Assembly (NCBI GenBank): GCA_964036045.1
Contig: OZ038378.1
Coordinates: 7,688,001-7,752,000 of the forward strand
Reading direction: 5' to 3'
From: Eutreptiella sp. 'Long Island Sound 2002'
Taxonomy: Eukaryota; Protista; Euglenida
Length of the DNA stretch: 64,000 nucleotides
Of this stretch, positions 4,484-29,900 are shown in pieces; the stretch's first letter is position 1; each line of letters starts with the position of its first letter. The notes beneath the pieces were generated by a model. It searched no databases, was not told the origin of the DNA, and worked only from the letters and a program-made list of their open reading frames with translations. Made by a program: the position numbers and the translations under genes.

Positions 4484-4810
4484 ACCCACACAGAGCCACA
4501 CAGAGCCACAAAGCACCACACAGCACCACACAGAACCACACAGAGCCACACAGCACCACACAGAGCCACACAACACCACACGGAGCCACACAGGGACACA
4601 CAGCACCACACAGAGCCAACACGGAGCCACACAGCACCAAACAGAGCCACGGAGCACCACACAGCACCACACACAGCCAGAGAGCACCACACAAAGCCAC
4701 AGAGAGCCACGCACAGCCACACAGTGCCACACAGAGCCACACAGCACCACACAGCACCACACAGAGCCGCACAGAGCCACACAAGGCCACACAGCACCAC
4801 ATAGCACCGA
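4484..4810. repeat. 10-bp minisatellite (CACAGAGCCA / CACAGCACCA variants)
   Basis: Directly visible tandem 10-mers, preceded by a G-homopolymer at ~4461-4475. Confidence 0.93.
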
Positions 4811-6499: not shown

Positions 6500-9270
6500 A
6501 TTTTGTCGATGCAACCCCCAAACCAGCTAAGGGACAAACACTTGACTGCACTGAGAGTGTCCAAGCAGCTCTCCAAGACACTTGAAGTTCATTGTGACCT
6601 GCACCCTGTGCCGCCTCCGGAGCTCCTCCAACAGCTGCCCGTCGCAGAAATTACTCAGCACCTGCTTCTTCGTTCGTTGTCGCTCTGCATTTGCGGTTGT
6701 ACAGGTCTCCAAAGTAGTGCAACTTCATCCTCTTCAAAGTCTTTCAAGAGAAGTCCTTGTCACTTCATAGAAACTCCAAAATAACTTGAAACCTCAAACT
6801 TGTAAAACCCAAGCATCAATATTGTCGTCGTCTTTTGTCAACGACGAGTGTTCTTGATTTTTCGTCGACGCTCTCATGGTCTGGACGATGAAGCCTTTGG
6901 TAGATTTGAAATCAGCGTTCAAAGTATGCAAGTATAGCTGTGAATTATCATAGTAGATCCTTCATTTTAGAACCATGTCTTCTTGGACAGCGTACAACAA
7001 CAGCTCATCGTTGTCGTTCACCAAAGTCGAATTTTCTGGGTTGTACAGTCTTTGTCGTTCCTTCTAGCTATTAATAGGGCAAGACCTGCCGTTCTGCAAG
7101 GACATTTTGGTGTGCAGGGGTGATACCCGTCTACACGTTCATGTAGGTCCTTAAGAGACCTGAGCCATTGGTGGTCCCAGATCTTCCTCAATACTTGAGA
7201 AACACAGTCATTCGTCCCTAAGAAAGAGGCCGTGCGGCGACCCCGACCCTGCCCCTCAATACCTCCATTTGTGGTGCTCAAAGCACTGCATGCGTTGCCG
7301 TTTTCGGTATCCGCGAGTAGGGCCGCTAAAGTGAGCAATGACAAACATAGATGCAAGCAATTGCTATGGTACAATCAATGTGCCAAGCAAGCAACCGGAG
7401 GCTTGAATGGGCTGAGAAGGCTCTTACCTTGACTACAACATTGCGTAGGTGTCGCTCCAACTTCCCCAGAGGCAATATCCCCCCCTTCGGGGGGCTATCT
7501 CTTAAACCACACCATCCTCGCCTACAACCCAAACACCCAGCTAACTTGCAATCCACACCTGCAGCCGCCTCCGGAGCTCCTCCAACAGCTGCCTGTTGCT
7601 GAAATTACTCAGCACCTGCTTCTTCGTTCGTTGTCGCTCTGCATTTGCGGTTGTAGAGGTCTGCAAAGTAGTGCAACTTCATCCTCTTCAAAGTCTTTCA
7701 AGAGAAGTCCTTGTCACTTCATAGAAACTCCAAAATAACTTGAAACCTCAAACTTGTAAAACCCAAGCATCAACATTGTCGTTGTCTTTTGTCAACGAGA
7801 GTGTTGTTGAATTTTCGTCGACGCTCTCGTGGTCTGGACGTTGACGCCTTTGGTAGAGTTGAAGCGCCCCAGGAACGGCGACTCCACCAAGTTTTTCAAC
7901 AGCACCTTGCTCTTTGGTGTATTTACGAGAAGTCCAAGGAATTGTTCAAAGTTGGTGACAAGCAAGATAATACCGCACACTACATGTAAACATTGCAATT
8001 GCTCTTATAGACACCAAATCCACAACTCAGTCAAAAACATGATTGGGCGTTGGCATTTTTTGGTTTAGTACCAAAATTATCTTACTTTGACTTTGCTGTA
8101 TCGTTCAGCTGTCCTACGGGTGAAGCAGCTCCTGGAAGCATACATGATGCTTGTTGTAGCAGTGTTGTTAGTCCCACAGCTTTTTGTGGTAGAGAGAGCG
8201 GCGGTTATGAAGGTGGTGCATTCACAGTCCAGCGTACGGTAGTGTGATGCCCTCCACCAGGCGCTGTTTCTGTTGGTGGTCTGCCATATGCTTTCTTGAA
8301 GTGTGTTTTATAACCAAGACTCCATGACACCGCATTTTCTTGACGGCACCACAAGCGTGCCACAGACCAACCACAATATGCCCACCTTTCAAATATCTCT
8401 TTTGCTCCAATGGTAGTTGGTCTTGTAGTTGATCCTCTATTTTGAAGAAGCGTGGTTCTGATCACCCACTGGTGCAAAACATTAAACACAAAAATCGCCC
8501 ATCTCGACTCTTCTCACCCGTTGCCATGAAAGATCACCAAAATTCGCGTAACTTAGTTGCAGTGTGGACACGGTCATGTAGTCGCTGGCCTTGCTACGTC
8601 TTTATAATGCCGCGTTTGGTGCTAGAGCTCACGCACCAAACTGTCTGTCTGTTGCTTTCTCTCCACCCTACCCGACATTCGGCATCTCAAGCGGCATTGT
8701 AATGCCTACGGGTGTATGTCCTAGGAAAATCATGGACGCGGACTCCTTCGCCTCCAGCTCCTTCACAGGTCCCAACCTACAAGTGATGCATCATGATATT
8801 GAACATACTATCGATTAGTGCACACTTAGCCATACACGTTGGGACCCACGTTGGGCTGCACAAACTGTTCCTTGTCCTCCACTGATTAAGTGTATCCTAT
8901 GCCATACACACAGTGGCTCCGTGAGGCATGATTGGAGTGATGTAGTGTCAAGCACTACCTGAAGATCACATCCTTACCAGCACTAGCCCGACATCATTTT
9001 CTTTCCACTCCCATGCATATGCGCAATTCGCAAGAACATCCAATGCTTCATTTTCTTTGCAACTGGGGGCTTTGCGATAACTCGAGCTAGACTTAACCGG
9101 ACCAACTCCTTCTCTATGGAGACATGCACACGCATCACCGACATGCGCCCAATTCCACGATAGCCATCTTTCAACTTTTCAGCTGTCACTTCTGTCTTGT
9201 CCCGGGCCCCTTCGATCTGTTGAGCATTGTTTCCCGTTGCTTGTCGGGGAAGTGTTCCAGAGGATGACAT
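6500..9270 (-). pseudogene. Decayed protein-like reading frames of unknown identity, possibly cargo of the adjacent large element
   Basis: Stop-interrupted but protein-like minus-strand translations, e.g. RLYNPENSTLVNDNDELLLYAVQEDMVLK*RIYYDNSQLYLHTL and the ORF at 8983-9270. No family motif was recognised. Confidence 0.3.
6612..7863. repeat. Pair of ~300-bp direct repeats (~6612-6910 and ~7566-7863)
   Basis: The near-identical block CCTCCGGAGCTCCTCCAACAGCTGCC...CCTTTGGTAGA occurs twice, ~955 bp apart, with scattered substitutions. Confidence 0.9.
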
Positions 9271-9789
9271 AACTGCAAATTAGCATCCTTCAAAGACGTA
9301 AGTCAACAAGCATGCGTACTACACTATGTGCCACATCATGCGGTTTCTTGGTCGCTCATTCGCTGCATCGTCCATTTTTGACTGCGGTCGCTCTACGCCA
9401 TACATATGATCCACAATAGTAAGGCTAGTTTTTTCGTCCGCATTTTGACTTAAAAAGCAACCTGCCTATCGACACATACGAAGTATAAACGGCGCACTTA
9501 TTGCCAATTCTAGATGCCACCTGCTTTTGTCACTGTCGTATCAGACAAGGCCAAAATGAACACCATCAAGGACTAGATTATTAAAGGCATGCATGTCACC
9601 AAGCAAAAACGTTCCTCCATGCTCTACACAATCCCTATACTTAGCCTATATGAAGTTGCATGCGATCGCACCAAGGTCATCTCAATGATATCGCAACAGC
9701 CAAAAGCGACACAAAAGCATACAACACACGCCCCATATTCCGCTGTTTGAGACACAAACGATCCAAGCCATAATGCAAAAGCACATCAT

Positions 9790-12700
9790 GACGCACAAAC
9801 TCACAGCGATGGATTTTCATCGTGATACATATTGAAAAAATCACCGACCAAATGCAACATCTTTCATGCTGCTAGTATTGTGACCCGAGTACATAATTAG
9901 CAAACCACACTACGTTTACTACAACCTGTACTCTACGTACATATTTCTCCCCGCATTCACGCCCCCTATCGCACAAAACCTTGCGCTTCTGCAACACCAA
10001 TGGGGACAATAAATGCATTCAGCCACGGATCATTCAGGAAGTGAGTGCACCCTTATACCTCCTCCTCGGCAATATAAAGACGTTCTCTTGGATAAGAGAA
10101 TGCTGACAATGCGTCATACACCAAACCTCTTTCGCTATAATTTAAGGTTGCAACTTCGTATGTACAATGAATAGTTCCACTCCATAGCATTTCTTAGCAT
10201 CATCCGTCCAAAACACTTTAGCCTTGATAGGCATCCGCAACCAACAAATCTTGACCTAATTGCAAATGACTACGTATACACAATCAAGAATTGCAATTGC
10301 TAATCATTTTGTACCATCACACTTCCACGAGACTTCAGCCCTCAGGGGCACCGATAGCTAAGTGGGCGATCCACACCATGTAAGCTACCGTCAGCTAAAG
10401 AAAAGTTGAGAATGCACACAATTCTTCGCGTGAACGCAGTAAAAAAACCCAAAAAAAGACAAGTGGAATATATGGTTTGAAACCGCCTCAGTATTTGCAT
10501 CAATGATGCACTTGCGTATCATTTTCAGCGCACTAACCTTCTAAGCACAAATGTGTTAACGGGATTCCTTCTGAATGTGAACCCTTGCTGCAGAAGCCTA
10601 CATGCTCAACATATATTCAATGTTCGCATTGGTCTTGCTTGTGAAGAAATTGTATTTGAGTTCCACATGAGGCAATGCCGTATGTTCACGGGCATGCTTA
10701 CTCATCACGCAACAGAAACATCTGCACGGCTGTTATAAGCCTCCCAACGAAGAACATGTATCGCATATTCTTGAAGACAAGGAGCCACACACTTGGGAGG
10801 TCGGAAAAAGGTTTGCGGTGGGGTGGGGGGGTCATTCGAGCCCCCTTCCCCCGGGCGGGGGGGGGGGTTGGAAAGCGGGCTCGCGTGACAGGACTGGTGT
10901 CAAAACAAACATTTTACTGAATTTTCCCGGACTTCACTCCCACAGGTCCCTACGGGGTATACAAGGGGCACGGGTAGGGCCTAGAGGGGCAGCTGCCCTA
11001 TTGCGGTCAATCATGATGTCATTTAAAGCCATGTTTGGCAGGTGTTACACCTTTTTTTTTTGGAGGATCCAAAGAGCGGAGGAGGGGAAAAAGTGACGAA
11101 TGGGGGCACCTAGGGCTCCTCGTCACGGGTCGCGAAGCCCAACCCCCTTATAAAGTGGGCCAAGCGAAATACACACTAAGACCCCCACCCATCCCTCGGG
11201 GGCTAAAAAGGTGGCCGTGACCTCTCCTAGACTCACACCCACCAAGAAGGAAAGGGGGAAAAAAAGTATCTTTTTTTGGACACCAGAAAAATCCCACACG
11301 TGATTGTAGTGCCTTTCAAGCTTTTTTCTGTGGCAAGCAATCAATATGACGAATATTGGAATGCAGAGCATTTGCATGTGTACACAATGTTTCCCTCTAC
11401 CCCCCTAAAAGACGGCATTCAAATTGTGTGCAAAAATGTGGCGGGACTGCCAAGAGGAGGCCAAGGTGGGGCACTATCTGGTAGTTTTTTGTTGGATGAG
11501 ATGCAGCTTGAATTGACCGGACATAAATACCACCACTATTGGCAGTTGGGGGGGGATAAGGGGCTGATGTTTAGCATTTGTCACGGGAGCCCCCACTTTT
11601 TGGGGGGTTTGGGAGTTGTTTGGAGGTCCCCGTCATGGGAGCCCTCTTTCCTTGGGGGGGGGGGAGGGGGGGCATGGCTTGTTTTTTCGTGGCTCGTCAC
11701 GGGAGCCACCCCAGGGGGGAGGGGGGGGTCCGGAAAATCGGCTCGAACGACCCCCGCCCCCCGTAAACCTTCCCCCCCCCACCCCTTTCGCAGTGCGTGA
11801 ACACTTTGTACCATACCAACAACCTCCACCGCGACAAATATGAAAGAAACATTTTTTTTGCAAGAAACATGCGCCTTTGTCATTGACTCAACCTCGCATC
11901 ATAGCATCATGTGACGTTTCTTCAGCGGGCACCCGCCATGCCTTAAAACCCAAAATACATTTAATACCAAAAAGTCCACTTCCTTAGATGGGCAACGGGT
12001 GGGTCGGAGGGATTCCACTACACTCCACCTTCCAAATCTCGCAAGGCTCGCTGTCACCCATCACCACCCACAGACTCGTGCATTCTAAAGTCTTAGGGAC
12101 GTGCAAAACCTTTTGTCGAAAACGAGTATAGTTCTAGAGGTAGGCCTAGTTCGTGCATCATAACACATCCAAAGGAACCACTACCTGATACCTGTGAATG
12201 GAGATAAATAATATGTTCCATGGTTGACCACAAATCTATGTGCAAGTCCCTCCACAACCAAGGGGCTTGGTTGAGAGAGAACGCGATGTATAAGCACCGC
12301 ATCAAACCTACCTCTTGAATGGTGATCGCCGCTTTGACAGTGCTACATTGTAAGAGTCACCACCTTGCCGAAGACCGTCAAATGGAATTCAAATACACCT
12401 CACGTTATTGAGCCCCGGTGGACAAATGGAAAGTCTGAAGAGCGAACAACGTAGTCAAAAAGCAAAAGGAAGATACGTGAAGTCAAGGACTAATAGATGG
12501 CAACAAGAGGTGTCCGAATACCGTTCACTTTGAGGTGCAAGAAATGCAGTTGCGCACGCCAACCAAAGTACAACTGAATAAAACACTCTCTTAACGGTCC
12601 ATCCAAATCATAGCGCAAAAGAATATCATGAAGCATAGACTCACAATGACGGATTTTCATCCTTACACGTATTAAAAGTCACCAACCAAATGCAACATAT

Positions 12701-14430
12701 TTCATGCTGCTGCTAGTGTGACCCGAGTACATAATAAGCAAGCTGCACTACGTTTGCTATAACCTATACTCTACATACATGTTTATCCCCCCATTCACGC
12801 CACCTATCCCACAAAACCTTGCCCGTATGCTGCGTGAATGACACCAATACATGCATTCAGCCACAAATCATTCACTAAGTCAGTGCAACCTCATACCTCC
12901 TCCTCAGCAATCTAAACAAGTTCTCTTGGATAAGAGACTGCCGACAATGCATCACACCCCAAACCTCTTTCGCTATAATGTAGCGTTGCAACTTGGTATA
13001 TCGATGAATAATTGCAATCGATAGCATTTCTTACCCTCATCCTTCCAAAACAATTTAGCCTTGAGACACATCCGCAACCAACAAATCTTGGCCCAATTGC
13101 TGCTGACTCCGTGTACGCAATCAAGAATTGCAATTGCTAGCATGTTGCACCATCACCCTCCCATGAGACTTCAGCCCTCCGGGGCACCGATAGCTAAGTG
13201 GGCGATCCACACCATGCAAGCTACCATTAGCTAAGTAACATTTCCGAATGGACACAAGTCTTCGCGTGAACATAGTGAAAAAAAAAACAAAAAAACAGAC
13301 AAGTCGAATATATCTTTTCAAACCGAGTATGTACATTAATGGTCTACTTGCGTATCATTTTCAATGCACTAACCTTCTCAGCACAAACGCTTCAACGGTG
13401 TTGCTTCTGAATGAGAACCCTTGCCGCAGAAACCCGCACGACCAGCATATATTCCGTGTTTGCAATGTTCTCGTACCCTTCTTACAGCTACATTATTCCA
13501 TTGTAATGGTCCTTTGCAATACCACATTCTTTTCTAGTGCAATTACACCAAAACAAACATATTGGGCAATACTCAAACAACCAATTCCATCCAATAGACT
13601 TTTGAAGGAATTGTATTTGAGTTCCGCGTGTGCTAATCTTCACGGGGCATACATATTCACCACGCAAGAAACATCTACACGGCTGTTATGAGCCTCCCAA
13701 CGAAGAACATATCGCAGATTCTTGAAGACAAGGAGCCATACACTTTCACAGTACGTGAACACTTTGCACCCTACCAACGACCTCCACCCTAACAAATATG
13801 AAAAAAACAGTTTATTTTTTTTTGCAACATACATGCGACTATCTCATTGACTCAACCTCACATCAGAGCATCGTATGATCTTTCTTTAGCATGAAACCAA
13901 CAGGGCTTAAGCGCAAAAATACATGTAAAGCCAAAAAGTCCACTTGCTTAGATGGGCAACGGGAGGCTTAGAGGGATTCCGCTACGCAAGCCTCCCAAGG
14001 CTCAGTGTCACCCATCATCACCCATAGAGACATGCATTGTAAAGTTTGAGGGACCTGCGAAACGTTTTGGGGAAAGGCAGTCCACTTCTAGAGGTAGGCC
14101 TAGCTCGTGCATCATAACACATCCAAAGAAACCACCACTTAATTCCTATAGATTGAGATAAACAGTATGTTCTATGAATGACCTCAAATGTATGTAAGCC
14201 CCCACAGCCCAGGTGCATGCTTTAGATAGAACATGATGCATAAGTACTGCATCTAGCATACCTCTTGAAGGGTGATCACCGCTTTGACGGTAAAAAATTA
14301 TAACGTTCACCACCCTGCCGAACACCATCAAATGAAATACAAATACGCCTGAAGTTATCGAGCCCCCCGTGGACAAATGGAAACTCCGACTAGCCAACAA
14401 TGTAATCAAAAAGCAACAGGAAGATATGTG
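9790..14430. repeat. Diverged ~1.8-kb tandem duplication (copy 1 ~9790-12560 including a MITE; copy 2 ~12630-14430)
   Basis: Collinear shared anchors: GTGACCCGAGTACATAA (9880/12719), CCAAACCTCTTTCGCTATAAT (10121/12959), GATAGCTAAGTGGGCGATCCACACCATG (10352/13189), TTGAAGACAAGGAGCCA (10771/13721), TCATTGACTCAACCTC (11880/13845) and CTAGAGGTAGGCCTAG (12134/14088). Confidence 0.88.
10795..11784. mobile_element. Non-autonomous TIR element (MITE), 990 bp, with a 3-bp TSD CTT; PIF/Harbinger (Tourist)-like
   Basis: The left end GGGAGGTCGGAAAAAGGTTTGCGGTGGGTGGGGGGGTCATTCGAGCC is an imperfect inverted repeat of the right end GGCTCGAACGACCCCCGCCCCCCGTAAACCTTCCCCCCCCCACCC. The paralogous empty site at ~13740 (ATACACTTTCACAGTACGTGAAC) shows that CTT was duplicated on insertion. 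Confidence 0.85.
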
Positions 14431-14499
14431 AAAATACCACATCCAAACTATGTCGGCAAGCAGCGGGATATTATTGTGTAGAGATCGCCAGCCGCGTCC

Positions 14500-17400
14500 A
14501 CGACGATATTGATGCTACCCCGTTGATTTCATTTCCTTTTCGGGGTAGTGATCAGCCGCCTTCGCTTGGTCATGCCCGGCCTTGTTTGCCGGAAACATAC
14601 TAGCGTACATTGCCAGCAACCAATCCATCCGGCCACAACAACGCCTGCTCGCGAGAGACGTGTTACTATTCTCTTGTGCTTGCCTGCGCTCCACATTCTC
14701 ATAATATGCAAAGGATGTTTCGTAGGGCCAGTTCTCTTGCTGAAGTAGGTACACCGACATGTGTCCCTCCGTGGCAGAGGCAGGTTGACGCTTGTACAGC
14801 AAGGCCGCGAAAGGACCTAGTGCAGATGCACAGGCAATAGTAGCGGATCCACTTTGCCTCCGCCTTGGTTGAGCAAGTCAGCTTGCTCCAACCAAACATC
14901 AAATACGGCAAGGTCAACGTTTGGCCGCACTAATAAGAAGTTGAGCACCTGCTCCTCATAGGACAGGAGCCATACCTTCGCCAGATTCTGCACCCGCGTG
15001 ATCAGCATCTATAACATGCCACAGCCCCACGTTCGGTGACCAGGCTCCGTGGAAAACTCCGTCGCAATTGCACAAAGCGTCATCGCGACCCGCATGTGTA
15101 GTGTCTAGCATTCGGCAAGACCAAGGGGATCTGCGTGCGGGTGATGCCGCCCCTCAGGCCCAAGTTGGCCTCCGACTCTTCTGGACGGATGTGCACCGCC
15201 TTGCTCCACCGAATGGGATGCGTGAATTGCACCTCTACCCATTGAAGACCACGCTCCAGATCAGTCTCAAATCCCGTCTCCGGTCCAATCGCACCTTTTA
15301 CGTGTGCTGTCTCAACATCCTGGTTGCGCCCGCGATACATCAATTGCAACCCCTTCCACACACTTAAGACTCTTGGAATCGGTATGTGAATCCAAAATGG
15401 ACCCTGCCTGGCTACAATGCTTCTCCGTAAGCTCACACACTTCATAATGCTCGACCTTCCTCATGATGCTTGACCTTCCGGTCTGGACAATGGGACACCC
15501 CCTTCTTCTTTGGTATCTGTGCTGCCCGCTGCTTGTTATACTGTGCAACCTGCTTTTTGTGGGCAAAAAAGCTGGCTACGCCCACGGCGTACGGCGGCAC
15601 TTCGCCAGGGTGGCAATGCAGCAGCACAAGATCCTTGAATAGCCTGATCTCTTCGCTCGTGGGTGTGGTCTTCCGGAGGATGTCGGCCGCCACCACGGAC
15701 GGCAAGGAATGCGAATTTTGCTATGAACTGCGTCCAGACGCCCAAAGCGCGTGCCAAGTCTAGGACGGCCTTTGATGAGGTGTGACTTTCTTTCACCTAC
15801 CGGGCCCGTGACAAGCACCCGATAGCTATAGCACCTCACAACTGATGCACTAGCTTGCGACATCTCCTTTGCGCCGGCATCACGCTCGTTTCCCGGAGGA
15901 CGTGTGGTCGGTCTACACCGCAGCTGTGGACTCTCATATGTTCATCCCTCGTAGCATGTGTCATTGCAGAGTCATGCACGGCAGGATGTGCACGGACCAA
16001 AAATCCATCAACATCTTGTTCAGTGCCACGTGCATTCGCCGCCTCTCGCATGCGATGCGACTCCTCGCCAGCATGAAGTGCCCTCTCTTGCATGGACGCT
16101 TAAAACTTGGGGTACCGCTTCAGGTGCTCCCCAATGAGTTCACTCTCCGACACACGATAGTAGCGCTCTAGCGCCGTGAGTGGTAGGCCATCAGTTTGTA
16201 GCACTCTTGCAATCGCCGCTTCTGCCTTCATTGCAATGTTCCAGTTCTCGTGATAGACGATGCCCCATCGACGCAGGTCGGTAACAAAGAACCTATTCTA
16301 CACCTTAGGGATACCTCCATCTAGAACAATCCTCCTTTGGTCAAGCGACAAAGGCCCCTTGGCTACAACGTAGGCTCCGGAAAAGAACATGGCGGCCTTG
16401 TCATCGAATGCTATCTCACAAGTGACGGTAGCATGCACCAACCATCGCACCTTGTGACTTGGTGTAGTGTACTTGGTAACTCCAATTGCGCTACCTCTCT
16501 TCCAATGAGCATAGTCCGAAATCTTGTTGGGCGGATGTGGATTTTCAATCTGCCAGTGGGCACAAATAGCGGTCATTGGCTGTCGTGCCCGGAACTTGTC
16601 CACAAACACACGATTCACCAAGTGAGCATACCGCTCATGGTAGAAAAATGCCACATGTAGCCGAAGGTGCTGTCTGGAAATCCGGGCCCCCAGAGGCCAT
16701 GTGGCAAGGCTCGCTGCCAAGGCAAGGGCTTAGCGTATGGCATAGGGTCGTCGCATTGCAAGCTTGTTGTAATACGCCATAGGCACCTAACTTGCCGCAT
16801 ATAGCGTAGGTGGGCCCATGTCGTAATGTGGTGCCCTGTCTGCACACAGGCCCGAGCTTTGGGCCCGCAGCCACACCCAACACTGCCCAAGCGACGGCTA
16901 GCACTGCGACGGAAGGTGCCCAAGTCGTGAAAGGACCTCTTCCGCGTCATGCTGGCTGCCAAACACACGACCGGTGTCACTTTGCAAGGCAACGTGCGGG
17001 GCCATGTGGCGAATGCGCACATACACGGCCGCCCAATCCACCACCTCCATGACCCCCACAATGGGCTCTTGCTGCACAAGTGCCACCATTTTTGGCTCTG
17101 GTATGCATTGCCGCATTGCACCCGGATCCCTCTTCTTGTCGTGTGTCTCGGCTATCACCCGTTCTCAAAAATGACGGTTGTTCATCTCTAGGCGCGCCAC
17201 CGCCTTGTCACGTGGCACGGGGACGTATCAAGAGCCGCTCCTCTTGCCTTGTAGTGCACCAAATAGGAATCGGAGAAGTGGCCCTCGTCGCAGTGCTCGA
17301 TACAAATGTGGCACCCGCTATTATAGCGGTACAACGTCCTTTGTATCGGTATTGCCATCGGAAACTCGGCACGCAACCAGTCACATAGTTGCACCTTTCC

Positions 17401-19100
17401 CGTGACCGGATCGGCCCATGATGCACCAACCATGGCCTCCAAGTGGTCAGCAACATGTTTTGTTTGGAAAACTAATCTCAACCTTTAACAACTCTCCGAC
17501 GCAACGGCAGTGCTGCGGGAGATGACAACGGTGGGGCCCCTCACTATCCGTGCACGAACAAGTGTGCTTGTGAACTGGGTTGTCCAATTGAAGGTTCAGT
17601 AGATGCCGTTTGAGGAGGCGCATCGCCTCCTCGTGGGTGGTGATGCCAGCCTGGACGGCCGCCCGAGCTATGGCTCGTATCTCCGGGTCCCGGTCCACGA
17701 TTTTATCGTCGGTCCACAGCTTCGCATGAGTGTGCGCTAGGTTGCAGCGTACATTTCGGCCCCCTTGTCGTAACCTGGTAGTTTTTCCTATGGGCGTACA
17801 ACTGAACATTGCCGAAGCCACGCTCCTTGCCGAGCAAGATCCTATCAGAAGTTATGAGATGTTCCCTGCTCGAACAATGGATCAAGTATGGCAAATGTGC
17901 CGCGACTTGCGCATCAAGATGACGTACAATTCTCCACCAAAGCTCGCTAATCCTCGGAAGATGATCGAACGGCAATGTCATGGTAACAAAGTACGCCACA
18001 GGACTGTCTTCGCACGCATCGAGCGCTGCCAGCGCCGCCACTCTTGCTCGAGTGTCGTACGATGTCACGGGAAGACCCGGCAGCACTTCGTCTCCGAAGC
18101 GTGCACTCAACTCTTTTACGCTCTCCTTGTGGTGCAATGCCCCACGAAGGACGCGTCTCACGTACGTAGCACTCATCCCGCTCTCCATACAACGGCAGCA
18201 TAGGATACTGCAGTAATACGAGCACATGACGGGATCGTAGACCTCGGCTCCCTTGAGCCCAAGCATCTTCTTATAGATCATCCGCTCGGGGGACACCAAT
18301 TTGTCTTCTTGCGCTTTGTTAGCCACGTACAGCTTCGTGGGCATGCATCCGATGACATGGCCCCACGGCGTGCATTGAGGGTAGTGCCACGGCGCAAGAT
18401 ATGCCGGCAAATAGTCCCACAACACCTCGCCCATGTCCTGTGTCCGAGCTCGTACGCCCTCAAGCAAGTCGGACCACTTCTTGCTCTTCCGTTGTTGGGA
18501 CGATAGTATCCCGCCAGGCGCACTCCTTGTCAGCATGTGTAGTAGTCCGTACTCCAAGCGCTGCTCGCGACGACGAAGATCTTCGTCAATGTCCTCGTAC
18601 TCGGCCAACCCCGTCAAAGTGTGTGCTGTACCATGTTCTTCGCCCTCATCTCTTGCGTCCGCTTCGTCACCATGTCCAAGGTCAACAAACTGTGCCACAA
18701 CATCTGCATGATCTCCTTGCTCTGCACCGTCTATACCAGATGCTTCAACATCGAAAGGAATGTCCGAGTCGTGTGGTTGCTGTCACTGCCTACCAGGGCA
18801 AGAAAAAACCATCTAGGACCAAATTCGAGCTTACAAAACTGACACTGTGATTTGCCAGTTAACCAGAGGTAAAGACAGCTCATGCACGGGAGGGGGGGGG
18901 GGGTGCTGCGACACCCATCCTCCCAGGATGTCTGGAACGCCCCCGAGCCGTGCCACAAACGAATCATGGTAAGCAGACCGGCCGGCAATCTGCTCTGCCA
19001 GCGATCTCGGTGAAACACTCTTGCAGCCAGAGAGAGGGAGGGATCATGGTCCAGCGCAGACTTGCTGCGAGTGTGCGAGCAATGAGGCATAATTGGCAAG
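14500..19100 (-). pseudogene. Helitron-type RepHel (HUH Y2 Rep + PIF1-family helicase), frameshifted and stop-interrupted
   Basis: Rep motif I AYFVTMT (17973-17996); motif II NLAHTHAKLW (HUH, 17714-17737); HKHTCSC..HRC (~17550); motif III YLVHYKAR (YxxxY, 17242-17265). Helicase Walker A-like VTGPVGERKSHLIK (15780-15812); VVAADIL (motif Ia-like); FAHKKQVAQYN (IV, 15535-15570); TRTQIPLVL...TLH (V, ~15090-15142); GML*MLITRVQNL (VI, ~14980-15020). Order and strand match RepHel. Confidence 0.85.
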
Positions 19101-19949
19101 TGCTGACCGCTACTGAGTCAGAAATCAGATGTGAGCCGGCCTTGCTGAGTGATGAATGTAACTGAGCTTTGCAGTGTTCAGAAGCGTTTCCGGGTTGGAC
19201 GCTGGCGGCAAATCTGGTCCCGTGCAGGCCACTTCACATCGTGTCCTACAAGTGCCCCCAACTAACCACCTGATACCTTTTGCTGGAGGTTCACAACTCT
19301 TCCCTTTTCCATCCGTCCATCGAGTCAGTGCATGGGGGAGAGGAGTGCGGAGGGGAAGGGCTAGGGAAACGGCGCGGAGGTGGCTTGGGAATTGCTGCAT
19401 GGTGTTGCCGCCGCTGCTGCTGCTGCTGGTGGTGCTGCTTGTTGTTGGCAGCAAAAAAGGCGCGGTCCCATGGGCCCACACTTGAGCAAACCCGTGCTTG
19501 GGTAAGACGACAGCCCTTGCTGCGCTTGACATGTGGATGTGGACGCACGAGCCTTGGATGGACCAAATTCCACACTTTTCAAAACCTCAAGCCATGGGCA
19601 GGCACCATATTCCCACCCTCGTGGAGTTGTCTGCCATGGAACGCGTTCACGCCGTTGCTGACAACAGCCAACTTGGTTTCAGCAAAAACGGTGTTTGATC
19701 AGCATCAACACCCTAACGGACACATCATCATCTTCAGTGGCGCTTCTTGGGCAACGTTCTTCCTCATTTGCCCTATAAAGATCATCCAAAACTTCCTCGT
19801 TGATATGTTTCTAGGAGGAGATATCGGATTCATTCACGACAGCCTCATCACCATCTCCGTGTAGAGATCATTGGTCACCTTTGTCGTCCCCAAGAGCATT
19901 GATTTGAAAAGTCTTGTCGACTCAATATCAACATCAATGACCACAACAA

Positions 19950-21190
19950 TGTGTGCAGTGACAACGATGTTTGGCACGGCTGGATGCTCTTCGTTTAGTC
20001 GAGCAGTGGGAGGCCACGCTCGAGTATTTCAACGGCTTGCCTCGATGTCCTGCGCTTTTTGGAAAAGGAATTGTGGATCGTGATCATCAATTTCAAACGG
20101 ATTTGCTATGGCAATCGGTACCTCCGCATCTTGTACATCCTCCGGTGGCCTTTGCATGTCACCATTCACAACAACATCCGTCTGTACATAGAACAGCATG
20201 CTGCAAACCAACTCCTCCGGTGCATTCACGCACCGTCACGCCGTACGTAGGCAATCCACTAACCGGCCTTGGGTACCACAATGCACTGCAATGTAAGCTG
20301 CACTGTCCGGATGTTAGGGAGGGTTGCTACTCTCACCTTTGGGCCCAGTTGCACCTGACGATCCGCAACATGCGGCGCCCTGTGTCTTCCCGCGGCTTGC
20401 GGCATGCTCAAAACACGCACCGCCGTCAGGTCTAGAAGAGTGGTACATTCATGAGAAGGCTGTCGACTAATTTCACCGCGCACGTGATTCCAATGCCTGC
20501 AAGCCTTCGTCTCGCACACCATCTCGCCTAGGTGGGGCGGCGTAGGATTCTGCAGCTACCGTAGCAAGTCCGCCACACTGTCTCCACACTTTCTCCACAC
20601 ATTGCAGGGATAGGCAACTCCACAACCGCAACCTAGTTAGGGTTCTGGTCATAACGTCGCGCATTGCCGCATCGCTGCAAATTTCGCTCAACTGTGGTAG
20701 TCGTCGTCACTACATCCGCAGGTAATGATGAGCAATCACGGCGAACACATCCTCCGCGGTGATAGATGTCATGTACACAACAAAATGTGTTACTCCATCT
20801 CTAGACTGCCGGGCTTCCACAAACTTGTGCCCTTCATTGACCATGATGCCAAGTTTAACATCACGTAATTTGTGTAGAAGACCGACCGCTACCTATTCAC
20901 CACCGTCGAGCAATGAAACTACTCCTCGAATGAACTCTTCATCGCCACACGCACCGCCAAGCATGAAGTCTTGTAGTTTGTCAAGAAGAGCCGCCGATCT
21001 CGGACTACCAGAATACGCCACCACCACCACCTTGTGAATGGCAATGACCAACAAGGGGTGAACATGGTCGAGTCCCAGAATTTCCAACAAAGCTACTCGG
21101 CAAGGTTTGTTAGACAACCACACATTGCACCAAGCTTTTCAAGTAGCACGTGTTACCAACATTACCGGGGCCTGTCCGCATGTATTCGCT
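19950..21190 (-). pseudogene. Ubiquitin-specific protease (peptidase C19/USP) catalytic domain remnant
   Basis: Cys box GPGNVGNTCYLKSLVQC at 21121-21175, compared with canonical GLxNLGNTCYMNSxLQC. After a frameshift come LSNKPCRVALL, GDEEFIRGVVSLLD (QQDAxEF..LL-like), LVDCLR and NAPEELVCSML (PxVLxIxLKRF-like) in the expected order. The His box is degenerate. Confidence 0.72.
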
Positions 21191-23329
21191 TGGCGGTACA
21201 GGCACATCCTCTTCTACATTTGGTCTTACTTCCAGCCCAACGGGCACAACGTGACTCGGCACCTCGTATAACGGAAGATTGGAAGACCATTGAGTGGTTG
21301 GTGGCAACCCAATGCTTTCGCCTTGTGATGTGTCCTTCGGAGTTGCTGCAGATGTTGCTGAGGGTGGCATTGCCACTCTACCCACTGAAGTGGGTCTCTC
21401 GTAAGCAACCAGCATAGCTGTGGCAACGTTGGGATGCTCGACCTCCCTCATGTCGCGATCTGCGCATCGGTACCACCGTTTACCGTCCCATACTCTTAGG
21501 GTCGTAGCCTAATTTTGCTCCTCAACCACGTGTTCAAGGAACCCTCGGAGAAAATGTCGAACAAATTGATCCTCTCCATCAAAGGATTGTTCTAGACTCT
21601 CGGCGAGACCGACACGCAAAACACCTCGGCTGTCTTTGCTGTTCTTCTCCTGCGGATCCTATGGCGGTCTTATGGAGAGCACCAACAGCCACGTCGACAT
21701 GCGGTCTGCCAACATGGGGACTCGTTTCATATTGACACATCACCGGGTTGAATGTATTGCAAGCAGCCGTCGGACACCGCTCGCTACTCCCGTATGATCT
21801 TATGGCGTGGTGAAGCATGCCTCGAACGCACGGAGCTCTCCGCCCTGGGTGCACTAGTGGCCAAACACAACAATCCACCACTCCAACTGCCGGTTTCACA
21901 TTATCGCATCAGCACCACCTCTCCTCCGATACACTGGCCCTGGGACATTATGTACCTATATTTTCTTTGTGCATAGACCAGTGGCCCCGTTCATGTTTTT
22001 TGAAGATCTCGGTATGTTTTGACAGCATTCCACGCAACGTCGTGGCTGCCCATCTCAGTCTCGGGCTGCGCTCAGATAGCAAAGCTTGGGCTCTGCGCCT
22101 TCACGACTACACCAGCAACTCGGGTAAAGCATTCCTCGGAAAACATGTTCCATACCGTAACAACATCTATCTTAGTATCATCCACTTGCCACAAGGTAGC
22201 GTGCACCGGTCCAGCAACCAACTTCGCCCCGTCGAGTTTCCATTCAATACAAGCTTGCAAGAAGGCTCGCGGTAAAACGTTGTACTCCCTCTTAGCTAAC
22301 ACTGTTCGGCGTAGCACCAATGCCAATACCTGTTGCAATGCAGGATGTAGCTCCAAGCTCACCGGATCACCGATCATCTTGTTGGACAAGTCTAAAGGAC
22401 TCCACGTCATAATGAAGTGAACCGCGTCCGGCACAACGAACGCTACCGGCAACAAGCTATTGATGTTGCTTGTACCTTTGTCCCGATGCGACCCAATAGG
22501 CATCCGACCTTCTGGTTCCAAGTGTACCACTGCAATAGTACCGTCCTCGGTCTTCGTACATTTTTGTCCCCCCCGGGCATTCACTCACTAGAGGACCTCC
22601 GGAGCACAGCAGCCGCAACCTGCCGCACCGCTCGCTGAACCGCCAAGAACTCCTCTTTCTTCCTTCACCTCTCGGCCGCCTCCTTGAGTCGTTGCTATTC
22701 TGATGCTCAAGTTCCTCATCTGGTCCAATCAGGTACGCCTCGTCCAAGGTACCCTTCTGCTATAGCTCCCTCCACCACACACTTGGATCTGGCCGTGTAT
22801 CCACCGTGCGCGCAATCCAGCCGTGGCACGTCGGTCTAAGGATAGCAAACCCGCTGCTGACATCTAGTGATCGCGGCATCATCGAGAAGAACGACGTAGA
22901 TACCCCGCGGTTGTCCCCTCTCACCTTCAATACGCGGGACGCGAGATTCCCGGGCCGATTAGGATCCCCCTAACGCATTTCGTTACGGCCAGACCACTGA
23001 GAGAGTTGGTCCTCCCACGTCTTGAGCTGCAGTATGGCAAGTTCGATGGCGACGACCCGTGGCTGCAGCCGGCGAACTGTGTGGACCTCAGGTTCCTCGG
23101 TGTGGTATGGTTAGTAGACCTAATACTCAAGGCGTCCCGGGTGTGCTACAAGCCGGGATGCTCCGGGCAAAAGAAGCAAACGCATGCCACGAAACCACGA
23201 CCTTCACAAAGCCACACTTGGGTCAAGATAACGAATCCGTAGGAAGTACTCCACGGCTCTTGCCATCCTTCATTACCCCTTATTAGGTGGTGCCGGAAAC
23301 CCGCCTCCGCTTCATTTACGTAATTCGCC

Positions 23330-23700
23330 ATGACTCCCGTGGTTGATCCACTCAAACTCAGCATTACAAAGGATTTGCACGCCGACCACTTCTTCAGGAA
23401 ACAAGCTCATGCAACAAACACTGCACCGCGTGCTCGAGTGGCCATTGCTCTGGACTCCGAGTATGTTTATGATGGTCTGACTGAACGCATCCCGTGTTGG
23501 GAAAGGGACTCTTGGCGAACAAGGGTAGGGCCTGTTGCTCATGCAGACCTTTGGATTCAGCTGTTAGCTTGTATGCGACTTCACCAGACTTTAGTTCGCT
23601 TCTTCTGGCTCCCCTCACACATAGGAATTGACAGCAATGAAGGGGCAGATGCCCTAGCTGAGCAAGCGTGCCTTCGGCACCCTTACAATGAGCTGCGCCA
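23330..23700 (+). pseudogene. RNase HI-type domain fragment from a retroelement, inserted antisense into the Helitron-like element (insert ~22760-24010)
   Basis: VAIALDSEYVYDGLTERIPCWERDSWRTRVGPVAHADLWIQLL...VRFFWLPSHIGIDSNEGADALAEQA matches the C-terminal two-thirds of RNase HI (DS-Y, W..W, N/H-DLW, W-SH-G---NE-AD-LA). The N-terminal catalytic D/E residues are not visible. Confidence 0.85.
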
Positions 23701-26249
23701 AGCCAAGCGACATCGGCTGGATGGGAACTTGCCTCGACAGTCAACTGATCTTCCCCAGATGGTTATTGGGTGCATAGCGAGGAGGGGAGGGACGCGCATG
23801 ACAGGACCTCCCTGTTGTCGGAAGAAGGGGACGAGGGTAGTGGAGATGAGTCCGTGAGTGAGGGGAGTGCCGACACCGAGGGCGCTTTACCTTCTTCTAT
23901 GGATAGTGGTTCGAGCTCGGATGAATATGAGCAGTTCCCTCTCAGCTTCTAGGTGACGATGAACTTGGCCGCCGGAAGCGCCACAAGGGGTACGGGCACA
24001 TGACCTGACCCCTAGCCTCTCTCCTTTATGTATGTTATTGCTGCATTGCATTTGACCTCACTTTTGTTTGAACTCAAGAGTGCGTAGCCGGATCCTGTGA
24101 GCGGGGGTACCCGGTTGGCCAAACGGGGGTACCCGGTCAGCCAAGTATCCGTCTCTATGCCAAAAACACTGCACTGCGTCTTTGCTTGTTGCCTCAACTT
24201 CCGATGTACAACGGGGATAGAACGCAGCTCCGCTCGATTCAACATGCTCCCAACCTCCACTTCTTTGCTTATCCATTGGTCCACGATTTTCCAGCGTGGA
24301 CGCACCTGTGTGTAGCGGCAAAAGACCCTACAACAATCGAACGGTCAACTGTTCACGGCTTGAAAGCCAAAAGCTGAACAGTGATGGCTAAGAGACTCCA
24401 CACTTCACGTCTCGACGCTTTCCCACTTTTACTTTACTACGACCAAAGCGCGGGATTGATTGAGATTGAAAGAACCAACATGCATCCTCCACACACACAC
24501 ACACACACACACACGCGCGCGGTGATGTACACCAATGCGGTGATCTTTTGCAACGAACGATGCATCAAAATGTCCTATGTGCCCAACAAACCGTACGAGT
24601 CCGAGAACATTGACTCCGAACAACACCTTCATTCGCGCCTCTACTTCACGAACAACGGCCTCGGCTGCGAGTAGATCCGTTTGTGCATATGGCTGTCGAG
24701 TATAAGGATCAATCAACCGCACATCACTACGCCCGCATAAGCGGCACTACTCCACCCCTATTGTCGAATCCGGTCATGTCCTTAACCATGCATCATAAGA
24801 ATGTACGGTGTTTAAGAAACTCAAGTCAACCAAACCGTGACTGCCATACAAACCACGAAACTACCAAACTTTCTTTTCAAGATCTTGCGGCATCACGTTC
24901 GGGTCTATGTCCGTTCTGCGTCTCCCTATAAACATTTCATGGAAATAGAATATGCAAAACCCATTCGTTGCAATCGGCGCACCCTCTACTTCCGAGCATA
25001 CCGTGTAGTTATCAACACTTCACCATACGTGCATGAGATCCGCGTGCTTGTCGTTTCCTCTGGACATCGTCCTGCAGATCATCATCTTCTTCTTCATCAT
25101 GATGCTCCCAAAATGCATTGATCGATTCCTAATCCACGTCCTTCCATGATGCCGCAGAGCTCCTTCCCATTGACCATGTTGATTCGCCACCATCGGTTCC
25201 TAAAAAGAGGCATAGTTTACAAACTACCATTGAAGGCTTCTTATTCGGCGGACAATACACCTATTGTCATCTCCGACGACCTCTCACTACCAACAGCCGT
25301 TCACATACCATCATAGGGACACACCGCCGCTTCATATGCCCATTGCCACTTTTGAAATGCCTTAATGGCCTCTTCAACTGTTCGTAGTTTATCTACAAGT
25401 AACAATAAGCGAAGATATGCACAGCATATGGTAGCCTCATGAGAGGTCTCATCGACTCGGGACCCACCACAGCAGAGTATCTCCCAAAGGCCAAAAAAAG
25501 GCACAATTTGCTATGCCACCCACTCGCCATGAGCGCTTTCACCACCGTGCTCCGTGTCTTCAACGGCAGCCATAGGTTCATCATCTCTTGCATCTCCTTC
25601 ACCGAGCTGAGTTCTTCGTGCTGTAGGCACATTTGCATCATCGTTTGCACCCCTACCACTTTCAACATCCCTCCACATTGTCTTCTACGTGTGGCTTCTC
25701 AAGACAGCGAGATTCGTCTACCATCAAAGCTGTGGAACGTTGACGGTGCCTCTTTGCCCTAGCGCGAGCTGGATGGTACGTTGTATCCTCCTTCTTTTTT
25801 TTGTTTTGCTAGCATGTTTGATAGAAAACTATGCATAAAGTATGCAGAGTTGGGAACTCGACCGATCTAACAACATGTCTTGTACTTATACCATTCATAT
25901 GCGCAATTCTGTTACAAGATGGATAGCACCATCACCCTTCACTGATGCGTTGGACTGTGTATGCATTGGTTGCGGAGACGTGGAATATTCATGGCCATTG
26001 AAACTTTTATTGACATCACACAACTAACATCACACACAACCGCTACATTCGTAATTTGCAATGTGTTACACGGCTTTGCAATGTCCATTACTAGAATGCC
26101 TATCATCGACTTGGAATATCGATGACTATCATGGGTCATAGTGTTCCGTTCATTGGGTTGGTGCCGCTCATTTTCCTCACCCATCCACTTGTTTCTACAA
26201 AGCCCGACAATCACCCATTCTTCCTCGTAATTCTGGGCAACTGCACATG

Positions 26250-26480: not shown

Positions 26481-26989
26481 CATTTGATTCATCGCCTCTG
26501 GCAACCTGATAACAACGGGGAGGGGGGGGTTACACAACAATAGGCACAACCAGAAATTTTCCCCGTGCTCTTTCATGGCAACTTGATGGCAACCGGGAGG
26601 AGGTTGGTTACGCAACAACAGGCGTAGGCGAAAAAATTTCCCTTACTCGTTCGTAAAACCACCCATTTCCCCCCCCGTACCAACAGGAATTCCCTTCCAT
26701 GGTCCTCATGCTCGCTACTGCCACATGTCCCACTGCGTTTGAGAACAAAGAAAATGGTACGAGTGGGGGCCGTTCCAATCCATGACAACACAAATGGGCA
26801 ATTTGCACCGAGACTCCACTTTTTTGTACAATTTTCATGCACCGAGAGGCAAAAGCGTTAGATATCAATTGTAACTTCTAACAAACTATCCACAGCCACC
26901 GAATCTTAATACCTACCACACTGCGACCGGGGACCTAGGAATAAAGGGGTACGATCCCTTTGCTACCTGTGACACACAAAAAAACAACA

Positions 26990-29900
26990 ACCACTTTGCC
27001 CATAAAATGCATCTTTTCCGGCATTTTTCATGGGAAAAAGCAGCACCTTTTCGACAAGAAAGCTCAAATCTGCCCGTCTGTTGGCATTTCTGGTCTTCGA
27101 CACCCGCGTCACTGCGGCTGGAAATGGAAAAAATAGGGGGATGGGGTAACATCCCCATTGGTGCGTGTGATCCGCCAAAAAACACCCTTTTTGCTCCCAA
27201 GATGCACTTTGCACAGCACTTTTCATGAGAAACATGAGCAACTTTCTGACAAGAATGATGAAAATGCCCCGTCTGTTGCCATTTCTAGCCCTCAACGCCT
27301 CACTGCGTGCAGAGACCCTGAAAAACGGGAATAGGATCCCATTCCCACCGGTGAAACGGCAAAAACACCCATTTGGGCCTTCCAAAGCACTTTTCATGCA
27401 AAATATGGGCAACTTTTGAACAGAATGCTGAAATCTGCCTGTCTATCGGCATTTGTGGCCCTCAACACCTGCCTCATTGCAATCGAGCACCCAAAAACAT
27501 TGGGTTAGGGTCCTGTTCCTACCAGTGGAATGCCAAAAAATAACCATTTTACCCCCGAAAAACACTTTTTCGGACACTTTTCATGCAAAAAAAGTGGGGG
27601 GGGGCAAGTTTCTGACAATGGCGAATCTGCCCATCTATCTGCATTTTTCAGCCCCATCACCTACTTCACCGCGACTGGGGACCCACAAACAGGGGAGTGC
27701 TGTCCCATTCCTATCCACGAAATCCAAAATAGGCGCATTTTCCTCCCAAATTGCACTCCTTGTGGCATCTTTTCATGTAAAAAACAAAACCGCAGTTTTG
27801 TTAACCATAAATCTAAAATCCGCCTGTCTACCCTCATTTCTGTGCTTCAAATTCTGCTTCATCGCGCTTGAGGAGAGAAAAAAGAGTTGATAAGGTCCCA
27901 TTCCTATCCATGGAACCCAAAACAGCCATTTCTTCTCCCCCAAAAAAACATTGTTAGGGCGCTTTTGAGGCAAAAACCGCAAATTTTTCAACCAAAAATC
28001 GGAAATCCGCCTATCCAGCAGCATTTTTGGGCCTCACCACGTCCTTCCTTGGAACCAGGGACCCAAAGGACGGGAGCTGGGGTTCCATTCCTACCCATGA
28101 AACCTAAAACAGGCGCATTTTCCCCGAAAAAGGCACTTTTTTGGGGGCACTTTTCATGCAAAAACCGCAACTTTTCCGACCAGAAATGTGCAATCTGCCC
28201 GTCAACCTGCATTTCTGGGCTTCAACGCCTCCTTCAGCGCAACTGAGGACCAAAAAACGGGGGGGGGGGGGTCCTATTCCTACCCGTGGAACCCAGAACA
28301 GCCCCCCCCCCCCCCCCAATGCACTTTTTCGAGGACTTTTCATGTAAAAACCGCACATTTTTCGATCAGAAATCTGCAATCTGCCCGTCGTCCTGCATTT
28401 CTGGGCTTCAATGCGTGACCAGGGACCCAAAAATAGGGGGTGGGGTCCCATTGCTACCCGTGAAACCCAAAACAGGCACATTTCCCCCCAAAATTGCGCT
28501 TTTTCGAGCACTTTTCACGCAAAAACCGCAGGTTTTCTGACCAGATATCTGCAATCTGCCCATCGACCAGCATTTCTATTTCTGGGCCTCAATACCTGCT
28601 TCACTGCGACCGGGGACCAAAAATAGGGGGATGGGGTCCCATTCCTACCCGGGAAAACCCAAAACATGCACATTCTCCCCCAGAAATGCACTTTTTTGGG
28701 CACTTTTCATACAAAAACCACAAAATTTCCGACCAGAATTCTGCATTCTGCCCATCCAGCCGCATTTCTGGGCCCCCACACCCGCTTCACCGCAGCCGTG
28801 GACCTAAAACTACGGGGGTGGGGTCCCATTCCTACGCTTCAAACCCAAAACTGACTCCCCCCCTCAAAATGCACTTCTTCGGGCACTGTTCATGCAAAAG
28901 CCATAGATTTTCCTACCAGATATCTGCAACCTGCCCGTCGACCGGCATTTCTGGGCCTCAACACTTGCTTCCCCGCAATTGGGTCCCCAAAAAAGGGGGT
29001 GGGGTCCCATTCCTACCCATGCAACCCAAAACAGACACATTTTGCACTTGCACTTGCAAAATGCACTTTTCCGCGCACTTTTCATGCAAAAACCACAAAT
29101 TTTCCAACCAGAAATCTGCAACCTGCCTGTCTACCCACATTCCTGCCTCACTGCGTCCGAGAACCCAAAACTGGGGGGGGGGTCCCATTTGTATCCGTGA
29201 AACCCAAAACAGGCGCATTTCCCCCCAGAAATGCACTTTTTTCGGGCACTTTTCATGCAAAAACCACAAAATTTCCGACTGGAAATCTGCAACTTGCACG
29301 TCTACCCGCATTTCTGGGGCTGAGCACCTCCCTCACCGCATCCGGGGACCCAGAAATAGGGGGTGGGGTTCCATTCCTACCCATGAAAACCCAAACCGGG
29401 CGCATTTTCCCAAAAAAATGCACTTTTTTTTTGGGCACTTTCCATGCAAAAATCGCAATTTCCGACCAGAAATCTGCAATCTCCTTGCCTAGCCACATTT
29501 CTGGGGCTCAACACCTCCTTCACCGCGTTCGGGGAGCCAAAAATAGGGGGACATGGTTCGATTCCTACACGGGAAACCCAAAAAAAAATGCATTTTCCCC
29601 GGAAAAAATGCACTTTTTCGAGCACTTTTCATGCCAAAACCATAAATTTTCTGACCAGAAATCTGCAACGTGCCCTTCTACCCACGTTTCTGGGTCTCAA
29701 CACCTGCTTCACCGCATCTAGGGACCTAAAAATAGGGGGATACGGTTCGATTTCTACCCATTAAAAACCAAAACAGGGGCATTTTCCTCCAAAGTTGCAC
29801 TTTTTCGGGCACTTTTCATGCAAAAAGCACAAATTTTCCGACCAGAAATCTGCATCCTGCCCGTCTACCCGCGTTTCTGGGGCTCACCACCTGCTTCATC

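Follow-up and report, generated by a model that had tools for sequence, protein, structure and literature searches.

Does the ubiquitin-specific protease (USP) sequence that precedes a Helitron-type transposase remnant in the euglenid Eutreptiella sp. 'Long Island Sound 2002' belong to the same mobile element, or did two unrelated relics end up side by side? The stretch concerned, called the window below, comprises 64,000 nucleotides of contig OZ038378.1 (positions 7,688,001 to 7,752,000, forward strand), and all coordinates given here count from its first letter. A preliminary description had read positions 14500-21190 as a Helitron-like rolling-circle element in which a C19/USP deubiquitinase lies directly upstream of RepHel, the Rep nuclease joined to a PIF1 helicase. 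Very probably, the region is a pseudogenised minus-strand copy of a giant Helitron-like rolling-circle transposon family, whose intact members carry the USP in one reading frame with Rep and helicase.

Motif mapping on stop-to-stop translations located an intact USP Cys box (GNVGNTCYLKSLVQC, 21122-21166), the His-box region of the same domain (20262-20285) and a further block of it (MLFYV, 20182-20202), followed by Rep motif I (YFVTMT, 17961-17993), the HUH motif (NLAHTHAKLWT, 17711-17743), the two-tyrosine YxxxY motif (SYLVHY, 17245-17268) and, in the PIF1 remnant, a degenerate Walker A (GPVGERKS, 15777-15818). All of these lie on the minus strand and in the order previously described. When 20 stop-to-stop pieces of the window alone were scanned against Pfam, the sole match was UCH on the piece bearing the Cys box (E 0.0049, 16.9 bits), below the UCH cut-off of 23.9 bits, and neither Helitron_like_N nor PIF1 matched any of the 20 pieces. 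Profile searches of the window itself thus recovered the USP sub-threshold and the transposase domains not at all, whereas both UCH and PIF1 were recognized in the relatives described next. No Rfam match was obtained in the window.

Relatives were collected by an exhaustive HMMER search with the longest open piece of the window copy, a 359-aa open reading frame (ORF) at 17706-18782 that spans pre-Rep and Rep sequence. Nineteen were found, including P0001 (1,205 aa; 73% identity, E 1e-156) and P0002 (3,197 aa; 52% identity, E 6e-96, matching residues 1567-1878). The 359-aa ORF is itself recorded in the ENA assembly ERZ25074135 (contig ctg8917), where gene calls are plain ORFs; P0001, P0002, P0021 and P0022 occur in that same assembly and therefore represent further copies in this genome. 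A single ORF encodes UCH, this Rep and PIF1 in six clusters of 90% identity, represented by P0001, P0002, P0025 (with a Rep region 96% identical to that of P0002), P0026 and P0027 (both about 64% identical) and P0028 (50% identical, from a different assembly, ERZ28668936); P0026 and P0028 also carry GIY-YIG. At the three loci L001, L003 and L004 the translation was checked and is free of stops over 3,197-3,206 codons each, giving a 9.6-kb ORF that encodes, in order, a cysteine-rich N-terminus, a probably inactive first USP domain (USP-1), a second one (USP-2), a HUH two-tyrosine Rep, a PIF1 helicase and a C-terminal GIY-YIG nuclease. The placement of a C19/USP domain upstream of RepHel in a Helitron-like element was thereby borne out. 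In two sister proteins, P0010 and P0013, Rep, PIF1 and GIY-YIG occur without any UCH match in Pfam, so the USP marks one subclade.

Taken by itself, the window copy could be read as an unrelated USP pseudogene that came to lie beside a Helitron remnant by chance: its Cys-box match is sub-threshold, a foreign repeat parts the USP from the Rep, and decay has gone further in the USP than in the Rep portion. However, the same order and spacing recur inside single uninterrupted ORFs in at least six relatives, and colinearity between the window and the 3,197-aa protein extends over the full protein, to either side of the USP, which leaves this explanation with next to no probability. USP and RepHel, which might have proved to be unlinked remnants in other genomic copies, are linked there in single uninterrupted ORFs, and chance nesting is therefore ruled out.

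The identity of the protease was clearest in P0002, in which residues 1053-1365 match the full UCH profile (75 bits, E 1e-20). UCH was also matched in P0001 (39 bits) and P0028 (30 bits), and a PDB sequence search with P0002 returned USP structures. The call of C19 from the Cys box therefore stood for P0002 and fell short for the window's own piece, at 16.9 against 23.9 bits. In intact P0002 this domain, USP-2, retains the catalytic Cys, His and Asp (GNTCYLN, PGHW and CDD). Where a single USP domain had been described, two are present: USP-1 occupies P0002 residues 603-912, is 26% identical to USP-2 (E 3e-20) and shows a weak UCH match of its own at residues 605-643. Its catalytic Cys is replaced by Ala (GNAAHIN) and its His by Arg, and judged by these residues USP-1 is probably an inactive USP-fold domain. 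Both domains have left remnants on the minus strand of the window. USP-1, the first USP-fold domain, was placed at 21335-22479 by colinearity with P0002 and includes a Cys-box remnant (KGTSNINSLL, 22438-22479) and a C-terminal block (WYRCADRDMREV, 21440-21475), both found by motif mapping; USP-2 was placed at 20170-21172 by tblastn with P0001 (45-66% identity, E 1.6e-112). Long relatives of USP-2 were also sought, and only the family itself was returned.

Conserved motifs of the Rep region were extracted from an alignment of 15 relatives (A1). They read YFxTxT..FPG, GNLxHxHxxxWT and aYLVxY..EER and correspond to motif I, the HUH motif and the YxxxY motif of two-tyrosine HUH enzymes; the three hallmarks of HUH membership (motif I, HxH and YxxxY) are thus found in A1, and all three are readable in the window. 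Seven of the 15 aligned members match Helitron_like_N at E<=0.1, and P0007 does so well above the cut-off (E 1.3e-11, 45.5 bits; cut-off 28.9); P0007 in turn matches the window ORF at E 9e-12. The helicase was identified in P0002 by Pfam PIF1 (residues 2579-2730, E 1.2e-8) and by PIF1 helicases in the PDB (E 7e-10). It lies C-terminal to Rep in the same ORF, and the remnant in the window is colinear with it. Together, the Rep motifs, the P0007 match and the fused PIF1 domain support a divergent Helitron-like RepHel. The C-terminal nuclease is recognized by Pfam GIY-YIG in P0002 (residues 2990-3197, 24.9 bits), P0026 (24.4 bits) and P0010 (34.8 bits, E 2e-8), at a cut-off of 22.6 bits.

The coding region is part of a larger unit. 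L003 and L004 have ~24.8 kb in common and then diverge, with unrelated flanks on both sides, so the intact unit measures about 25 kb. At its 5' side is a tandem array (period ~187 bp), after which come a J-domain exon, an acidic exon and the one 9.6-kb ORF of about 3,200 aa; intact copies have a further, small ORF ~2.4 kb downstream of this last. Arrays with ~187-bp offsets lie upstream of the J exon in L001, L003 and L004 and extend over ~5 kb in intact relatives. A J-domain ORF with the HPD tripeptide stands directly upstream of the giant ORF in L001, L002 and L004, the same segment being readable in L003, and Pfam DnaJ was matched by the L004 ORF at 8952-9389 (E 8e-11) and by the L002 ORF (E 2e-9), both with HPD. 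The acidic segment comes next, and the reading frames of the J and acidic segments agree in L001, L003 and L004, an agreement that suggests small introns. The J domain, the GIY-YIG domain and the tandem array belong to the element.

Counterparts of this outer architecture were found in the window. The J-domain exon remnant lies at 25193-25802 on the minus strand (tblastn with the L002 DnaJ ORF, 45% identity, E 6e-27); it keeps the conserved exon start motif KKKKEDTTYHP (25770-25802) and a J-helix remnant (25385-25420) from which HPD has been lost, and the window piece gave no Pfam match. A tandem array with a ~187-bp period was detected by Tandem Repeats Finder at 28080-30224 (period 187/376) and widened by unit-based blastn to 26905-30481; in element orientation it sits 5' of the coding region. 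On the other side, DNA of the window gave no match to the intact family's 3' region, with the exception of one small ORF, the minus-strand remnant of which (9043-9243) was found by tblastn with L004 22057-22326 and L003 22022-22291 (39-40% identity over 67 aa, E 1.5e-11 to 3e-11). This remnant suggests that the element reaches at least that far. A separate observation concerns the ~1.4 kb directly downstream of the GIY-YIG remnant (13004-14432), which is repeated ~2 kb further on (10167-12481) at 78-82% identity; the pair may represent a duplicated 3' region of the element.

Several observations weigh against a Helitron-like identity. The Rep of P0002 has no Helitron_like_N match in Pfam, so that Helitron membership is carried by the motifs and by transitive homology. 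AlphaFold2 produced a poor model for the Rep region (pLDDT 55), a Foldseek search of the PDB with this model gave nothing significant and repeatedly returned weak matches to the adeno-associated virus (AAV) Rep nuclease (E 0.15-0.5), and a Rep-region profile searched against PDB sequences matched no Helitron transposase, its one match being a short motif of phycobilisome linker proteins taken up below; the structural searches thus failed to confirm the fold. DUF6570, which lies N-terminal to Rep and has been proposed as a marker of HLE2 elements (PMC11417382), is absent: no match was obtained at E<=0.1 in 15 of 15 family members, pre-Rep region included, or at E<=0.01 in P0002, P0010 and P0013. 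The window's own pieces, as seen above, miss the Pfam thresholds. Finally, the tentative ends of the element lack canonical Helitron features, the signatures sought being, for HLE1, 5'-TC and CTRR-3' plus a 3' hairpin and, for HLE2, short terminal inverted repeats and a TT target. These ends (left, a poly-C run and then GTTAGTGAG; right, CAGCGCTTGTT) were drawn from two or three copies of the intact family and may be wrong. Neither 5'-TC/CTRR-3' nor a 3' hairpin or terminal inverted repeat was seen in them, and the last 90 nt fold no better than shuffled sequences (z +1.1 and +1.3). The intact-family ends were sought in the window by pattern and by sensitive blastn, and were not found there. 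As a lead only, the ESM Atlas placed the Rep ORF, with high confidence, toward phage and plasmid HUH Rep families.

Two short motifs in or just before Rep were noted in passing. A segment before motif I (RGL..AL....EY..RFGD..LP; P0002 about 1745-1790, window about 18070-18200) is conserved in A1 and matches a repeated motif of phycobilisome linker proteins (PDB 8imk ApcH, E 5e-4), probably as a short convergent motif. Around residue 2020 of P0002, between the HUH and Y motifs, CDWLRGG contains LRGG (L-x-GG), which is identical to the C-terminus of ubiquitin. It is deleted in the window copy near 17370 and present in P0010 and P0013; because these two proteins carry no USP, LRGG is probably structural.

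Selection on the domains was assessed by the ratio of nonsynonymous to synonymous substitution rates (dN/dS) between the diverged intact copies L001 and L004. Values were 0.20 for USP-1, 0.22 for USP-2, 0.26 for the J domain, 0.03 for Rep, 0.10 for the helicase and 0.07 for GIY-YIG, as compared with about 0.57 for the linkers. All six domain values are significantly below 1, with p between 1e-8 and 1e-13 for both USP domains. These values bear on the possibility that the USP domains are passenger cargo, a host gene fragment captured in frame that plays no part in transposition. Helitrons often capture host sequences (PMC11417382, PMC6431247), P0010 and P0013 indicate that a RepHel of this clade can exist without a USP, and no close USP relative turned up outside the family. 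Yet both USP domains evolve at a dN/dS of about 0.2, USP-2 keeps its Cys, His and Asp, the arrangement persists in a second assembly and in relatives as distant as 50% identity, and a neutral insert in a 9.6-kb ORF would not remain open and conserved. Cargo is accordingly an improbable explanation: with dN/dS well below 1, the added domains are kept by selection on the element. For the USP domains, purifying selection shows only that they matter to it.

The same strong purifying selection, extending across the whole ORF, could also be expected of a host gene family, i.e., a domesticated RepHel-USP protein that is no longer mobile and has left pseudogene copies. The low copy number (90% clusters of 1-9 members) and the failure to find canonical Helitron ends point the same way. 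However, diverged lineages (97%, 91%, about 64% and about 52% identity) coexist in one genome, they share the ~25-kb non-coding architecture including the tandem array while sitting in unrelated flanks, and other transposons have repeatedly invaded the decayed copies (the window and L002). These are the traits of a transposon family, and we consider a host gene family very unlikely, less likely still than captured cargo.

Two further observations on the giant ORF concern its N-terminal part. Synonymous divergence between L001 and L004 is uneven, 0.57 in codons 1-600 and 0.11-0.19 beyond codon 1050, which suggests recombination between lineages. P0002 residues 1-600, the cysteine-rich region (window about 24926-22587), are under purifying selection (dN/dS 0.16). 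An HNH_2 nuclease was suggested for these 600 residues by an Atlas comparison with fungal proteins at very high confidence; Pfam returned nothing and the AlphaFold2 model reached pLDDT 33, and the assignment was set aside as unsupported.

With the family defined as Helitron-like, the coding part of the window copy can be delimited. Residues 1-3169 of P0002 are colinear by tblastn with minus-strand positions 24893 to 14437, the reading frame shifting many times along the way. The former coding sequence thus amounts to ~10.5 kb, and the 6.7 kb first proposed (14500-21190) is too short on both sides. Beginning at the N-terminus, the remnant of the cysteine-rich region (22587-24926, minus strand) was recovered by tblastn with P0002 residues 1-255, 215-485 and 491-524 and is 57-65% identical to L002 ORFs; it corresponds to residues 1 to about 525 and is broken by an insertion and a small inversion. 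Beyond the two USP remnants follow, all on the minus strand, the pre-Rep region with the HUH/Y2 Rep nuclease (17245-18782; homology to P0001 and P0002, alignment A1), the Rep-helicase connector with the PIF1-family helicase remnant (14900-17218; tblastn with P0002 residues 2083-2937) and the GIY-YIG remnant with degenerate motifs (14437-14778; tblastn with P0002 3053-3169, 55% identity, E 1e-30).

Foreign DNA interrupts this series in two places. A ~640-bp insertion in the N-terminal region (23512-24147, plus strand) appears as a colinearity gap relative to P0002 and L002. It carries an RNase H fragment: a 175-aa ORF at 23330-23857, also on the plus strand and so opposite to the Helitron remnant, has a clear RNase H domain (Pfam RNase_H E 6.6e-13) and is probably a fragment of a retroelement inserted into the remnant. 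Close by, ~180 bp (22970-23158), corresponding to P0002 residues 336-398, is inverted: its tblastn and blastn matches are read on the plus strand, opposite to the flanking colinear matches. The second insertion lies between USP and Rep, where ~0.8 kb of decayed linker coding sequence had been described. This stretch is instead a foreign multi-copy repeat of ~910 bp (18805-19714): its word depth is 130-720 as compared with about 45 in the flanks, contigs break at 18804/18808 and at about 19714 with loose ends continuing into other flanks, and it is absent from P0001 and from L002, the copy closest to that of the window. L002 itself is cut after the Rep domain by a long terminal repeat (LTR) retrotransposon at 13.6-20.7 kb, with gag zinc knuckle, protease, reverse transcriptase, RNase H and integrase.

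Relative to P0002, the window copy has accumulated at least 24 in-frame stops and 14 frame switches. The catalytic His codon of USP-2 has become TAG (20259-20261), the USP-2 remnant contains 9-10 in-frame stops and the helicase region (14900-17218) at least eight, and the Walker A and GIY-YIG motifs have decayed. By comparison, the Rep segment (17245-18782) has no stop in ~529 codons, where ~6 would be expected, and two frameshifts; in the remainder, stops average about one in 90 codons. The stop-free segment may be due to chance, to gene conversion or to later decay of that part. The lesions are real and not assembly errors, because independent unique-depth contigs from two runs are identical to the window over 16500-18804 and 19649-22400, with zero differences. 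Low-depth contigs identical or nearly identical to unique parts of 16500-22400 also occur in an estuary metagenome and in a run that bears the label of a second organism (X5 and X6), and those samples therefore contain the same or a very close species. Being a dead pseudogene, the copy in the window is capable of no transposition step, so the giant polyprotein envisaged by the preliminary description exists in relatives, as a single 9.6-kb ORF, and not in the window. As a fossil, the copy is of value because the intact family was reached through it and because it dates an old insertion that other repeats went on to invade.

How might the intact Helitron-like element work? Rolling-circle transposition is understood in outline from Helraiser and other HUH enzymes, and by analogy the Rep tyrosines would nick one strand at an element end and attach to it covalently, the 5'-to-3' PIF1 helicase would peel the nicked strand off, and a circular intermediate would be re-inserted. 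Cutting of the target or of the second strand may be the task of the GIY-YIG nuclease. Most likely, the USP would strip ubiquitin from the transposase or from host replication and repair factors, and the J domain would recruit Hsp70, so that a very large protein prone to aggregation and degradation could survive and work; such a role follows what has been proposed for the tegument-like deubiquitinases of Helentrons (PMC9741609). The preliminary description had suggested that the USP may protect RepHel or counter ubiquitin-based host silencing. That the added domains serve the element follows from the purifying selection on them. A stronger version holds that the lineage is still active, that its transposase carries a protein-stability module (the J domain for Hsp70 and the pair of dead and live USP domains) and that transposition requires USP activity; we put this forward tentatively and regard it as doubtful. 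Under it, the USP pair may act on the transposase or on a host factor such as PCNA or, alternatively, may cut the 3,200-aa polyprotein at xxGG sites, in the manner of viral papain-like proteases. A search for enrichment of xxGG cleavage sites gave six observed against three expected, which is not convincing.

Deubiquitinases have been reported from Helitron-like elements before, and the novelty of a USP in such elements is thereby weakened. In the HELIANO survey (Nucleic Acids Res 2024), Pfam UCH was found to be stably carried by HLE2 elements of subgroups c and d, mostly in lungfish and axolotl, as one of 17 domains encoded in ORFs separate from RepHel, and GIY-YIG was found in an HLE2 family of the moss Sphagnum (PMC11417382). 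The present family resembles these UCH elements in having a USP/C19 domain stably tied to RepHel at a conserved position. In contrast to them, the USP is in frame within one ~3,200-aa ORF and is duplicated, one domain being dead and the other live; there is also a J domain, of which PMC11417382 makes no mention, DUF6570 was not detected, and a unicellular eukaryote is the host. HLE2/Helentron elements commonly contain tandem arrays (PMC4067079, PMC7492417), and UCH, GIY-YIG and the internal tandem array are features of HLE2 type (PMC11417382, PMC4067079), which is a resemblance only.

Helentrons, in turn, carry OTU and herpes-tegument-like (VTD) deubiquitinase domains (Nat Commun 2022, PMC9741609; PMC6431247). 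For VTD domains, deubiquitinase activity has been demonstrated and protection of proteins needed for transposition has been proposed; active domains are paired with catalytically dead ones, and deubiquitinase classes are swapped in the same slot (PMC9741609). The shared feature is a papain-fold deubiquitinase within the RepHel polyprotein. The class differs, USP/C19 here, as recognized from sequence alone, and OTU or VTD there, as does the accessory nuclease, GIY-YIG here and an AP endonuclease in the animal elements. With the RepHel of Helraiser and Helitron1, the family has in common a protein in which a PIF1-like SF1B helicase comes after a HUH two-tyrosine Rep, and the Rep pattern of an FxTxT-type motif I, HxH and YxxxY. 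Unlike those proteins, it is very divergent in sequence (the P0002 Rep has neither a Helitron_like_N nor a PDB sequence match) and about twice as long, and its tentative ends show no 5'-TC/CTRR-3' or 3' hairpin. No paper pairing Helitrons with a J domain was found in the literature. What is new here is the in-frame USP fusion, the pair of dead and live USP domains, the J domain, the combination with GIY-YIG, the ~25-kb size with its conserved array, and the host.

Helitrons have thus repeatedly gained deubiquitinases of different classes (OTU, tegument-like and, here, USP), which points to a general need to escape ubiquitin-dependent control; of these, the tegument-like class is the one assayed so far. 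The intact, selected copies in this genome, with USP in frame with RepHel, a J domain and GIY-YIG, allow direct tests. Should USP activity indeed be needed for transposition, the element would become a tractable model for how Helitrons handle host ubiquitin control.

The window opens with a 21-bp satellite (1-4082; consensus TGTAAGGCCCGTGTAAAGTGG) of ~194 copies at 90% match and with a strong GC skew of 0.44, followed by a 10/30-bp repeat at 4486-4801.

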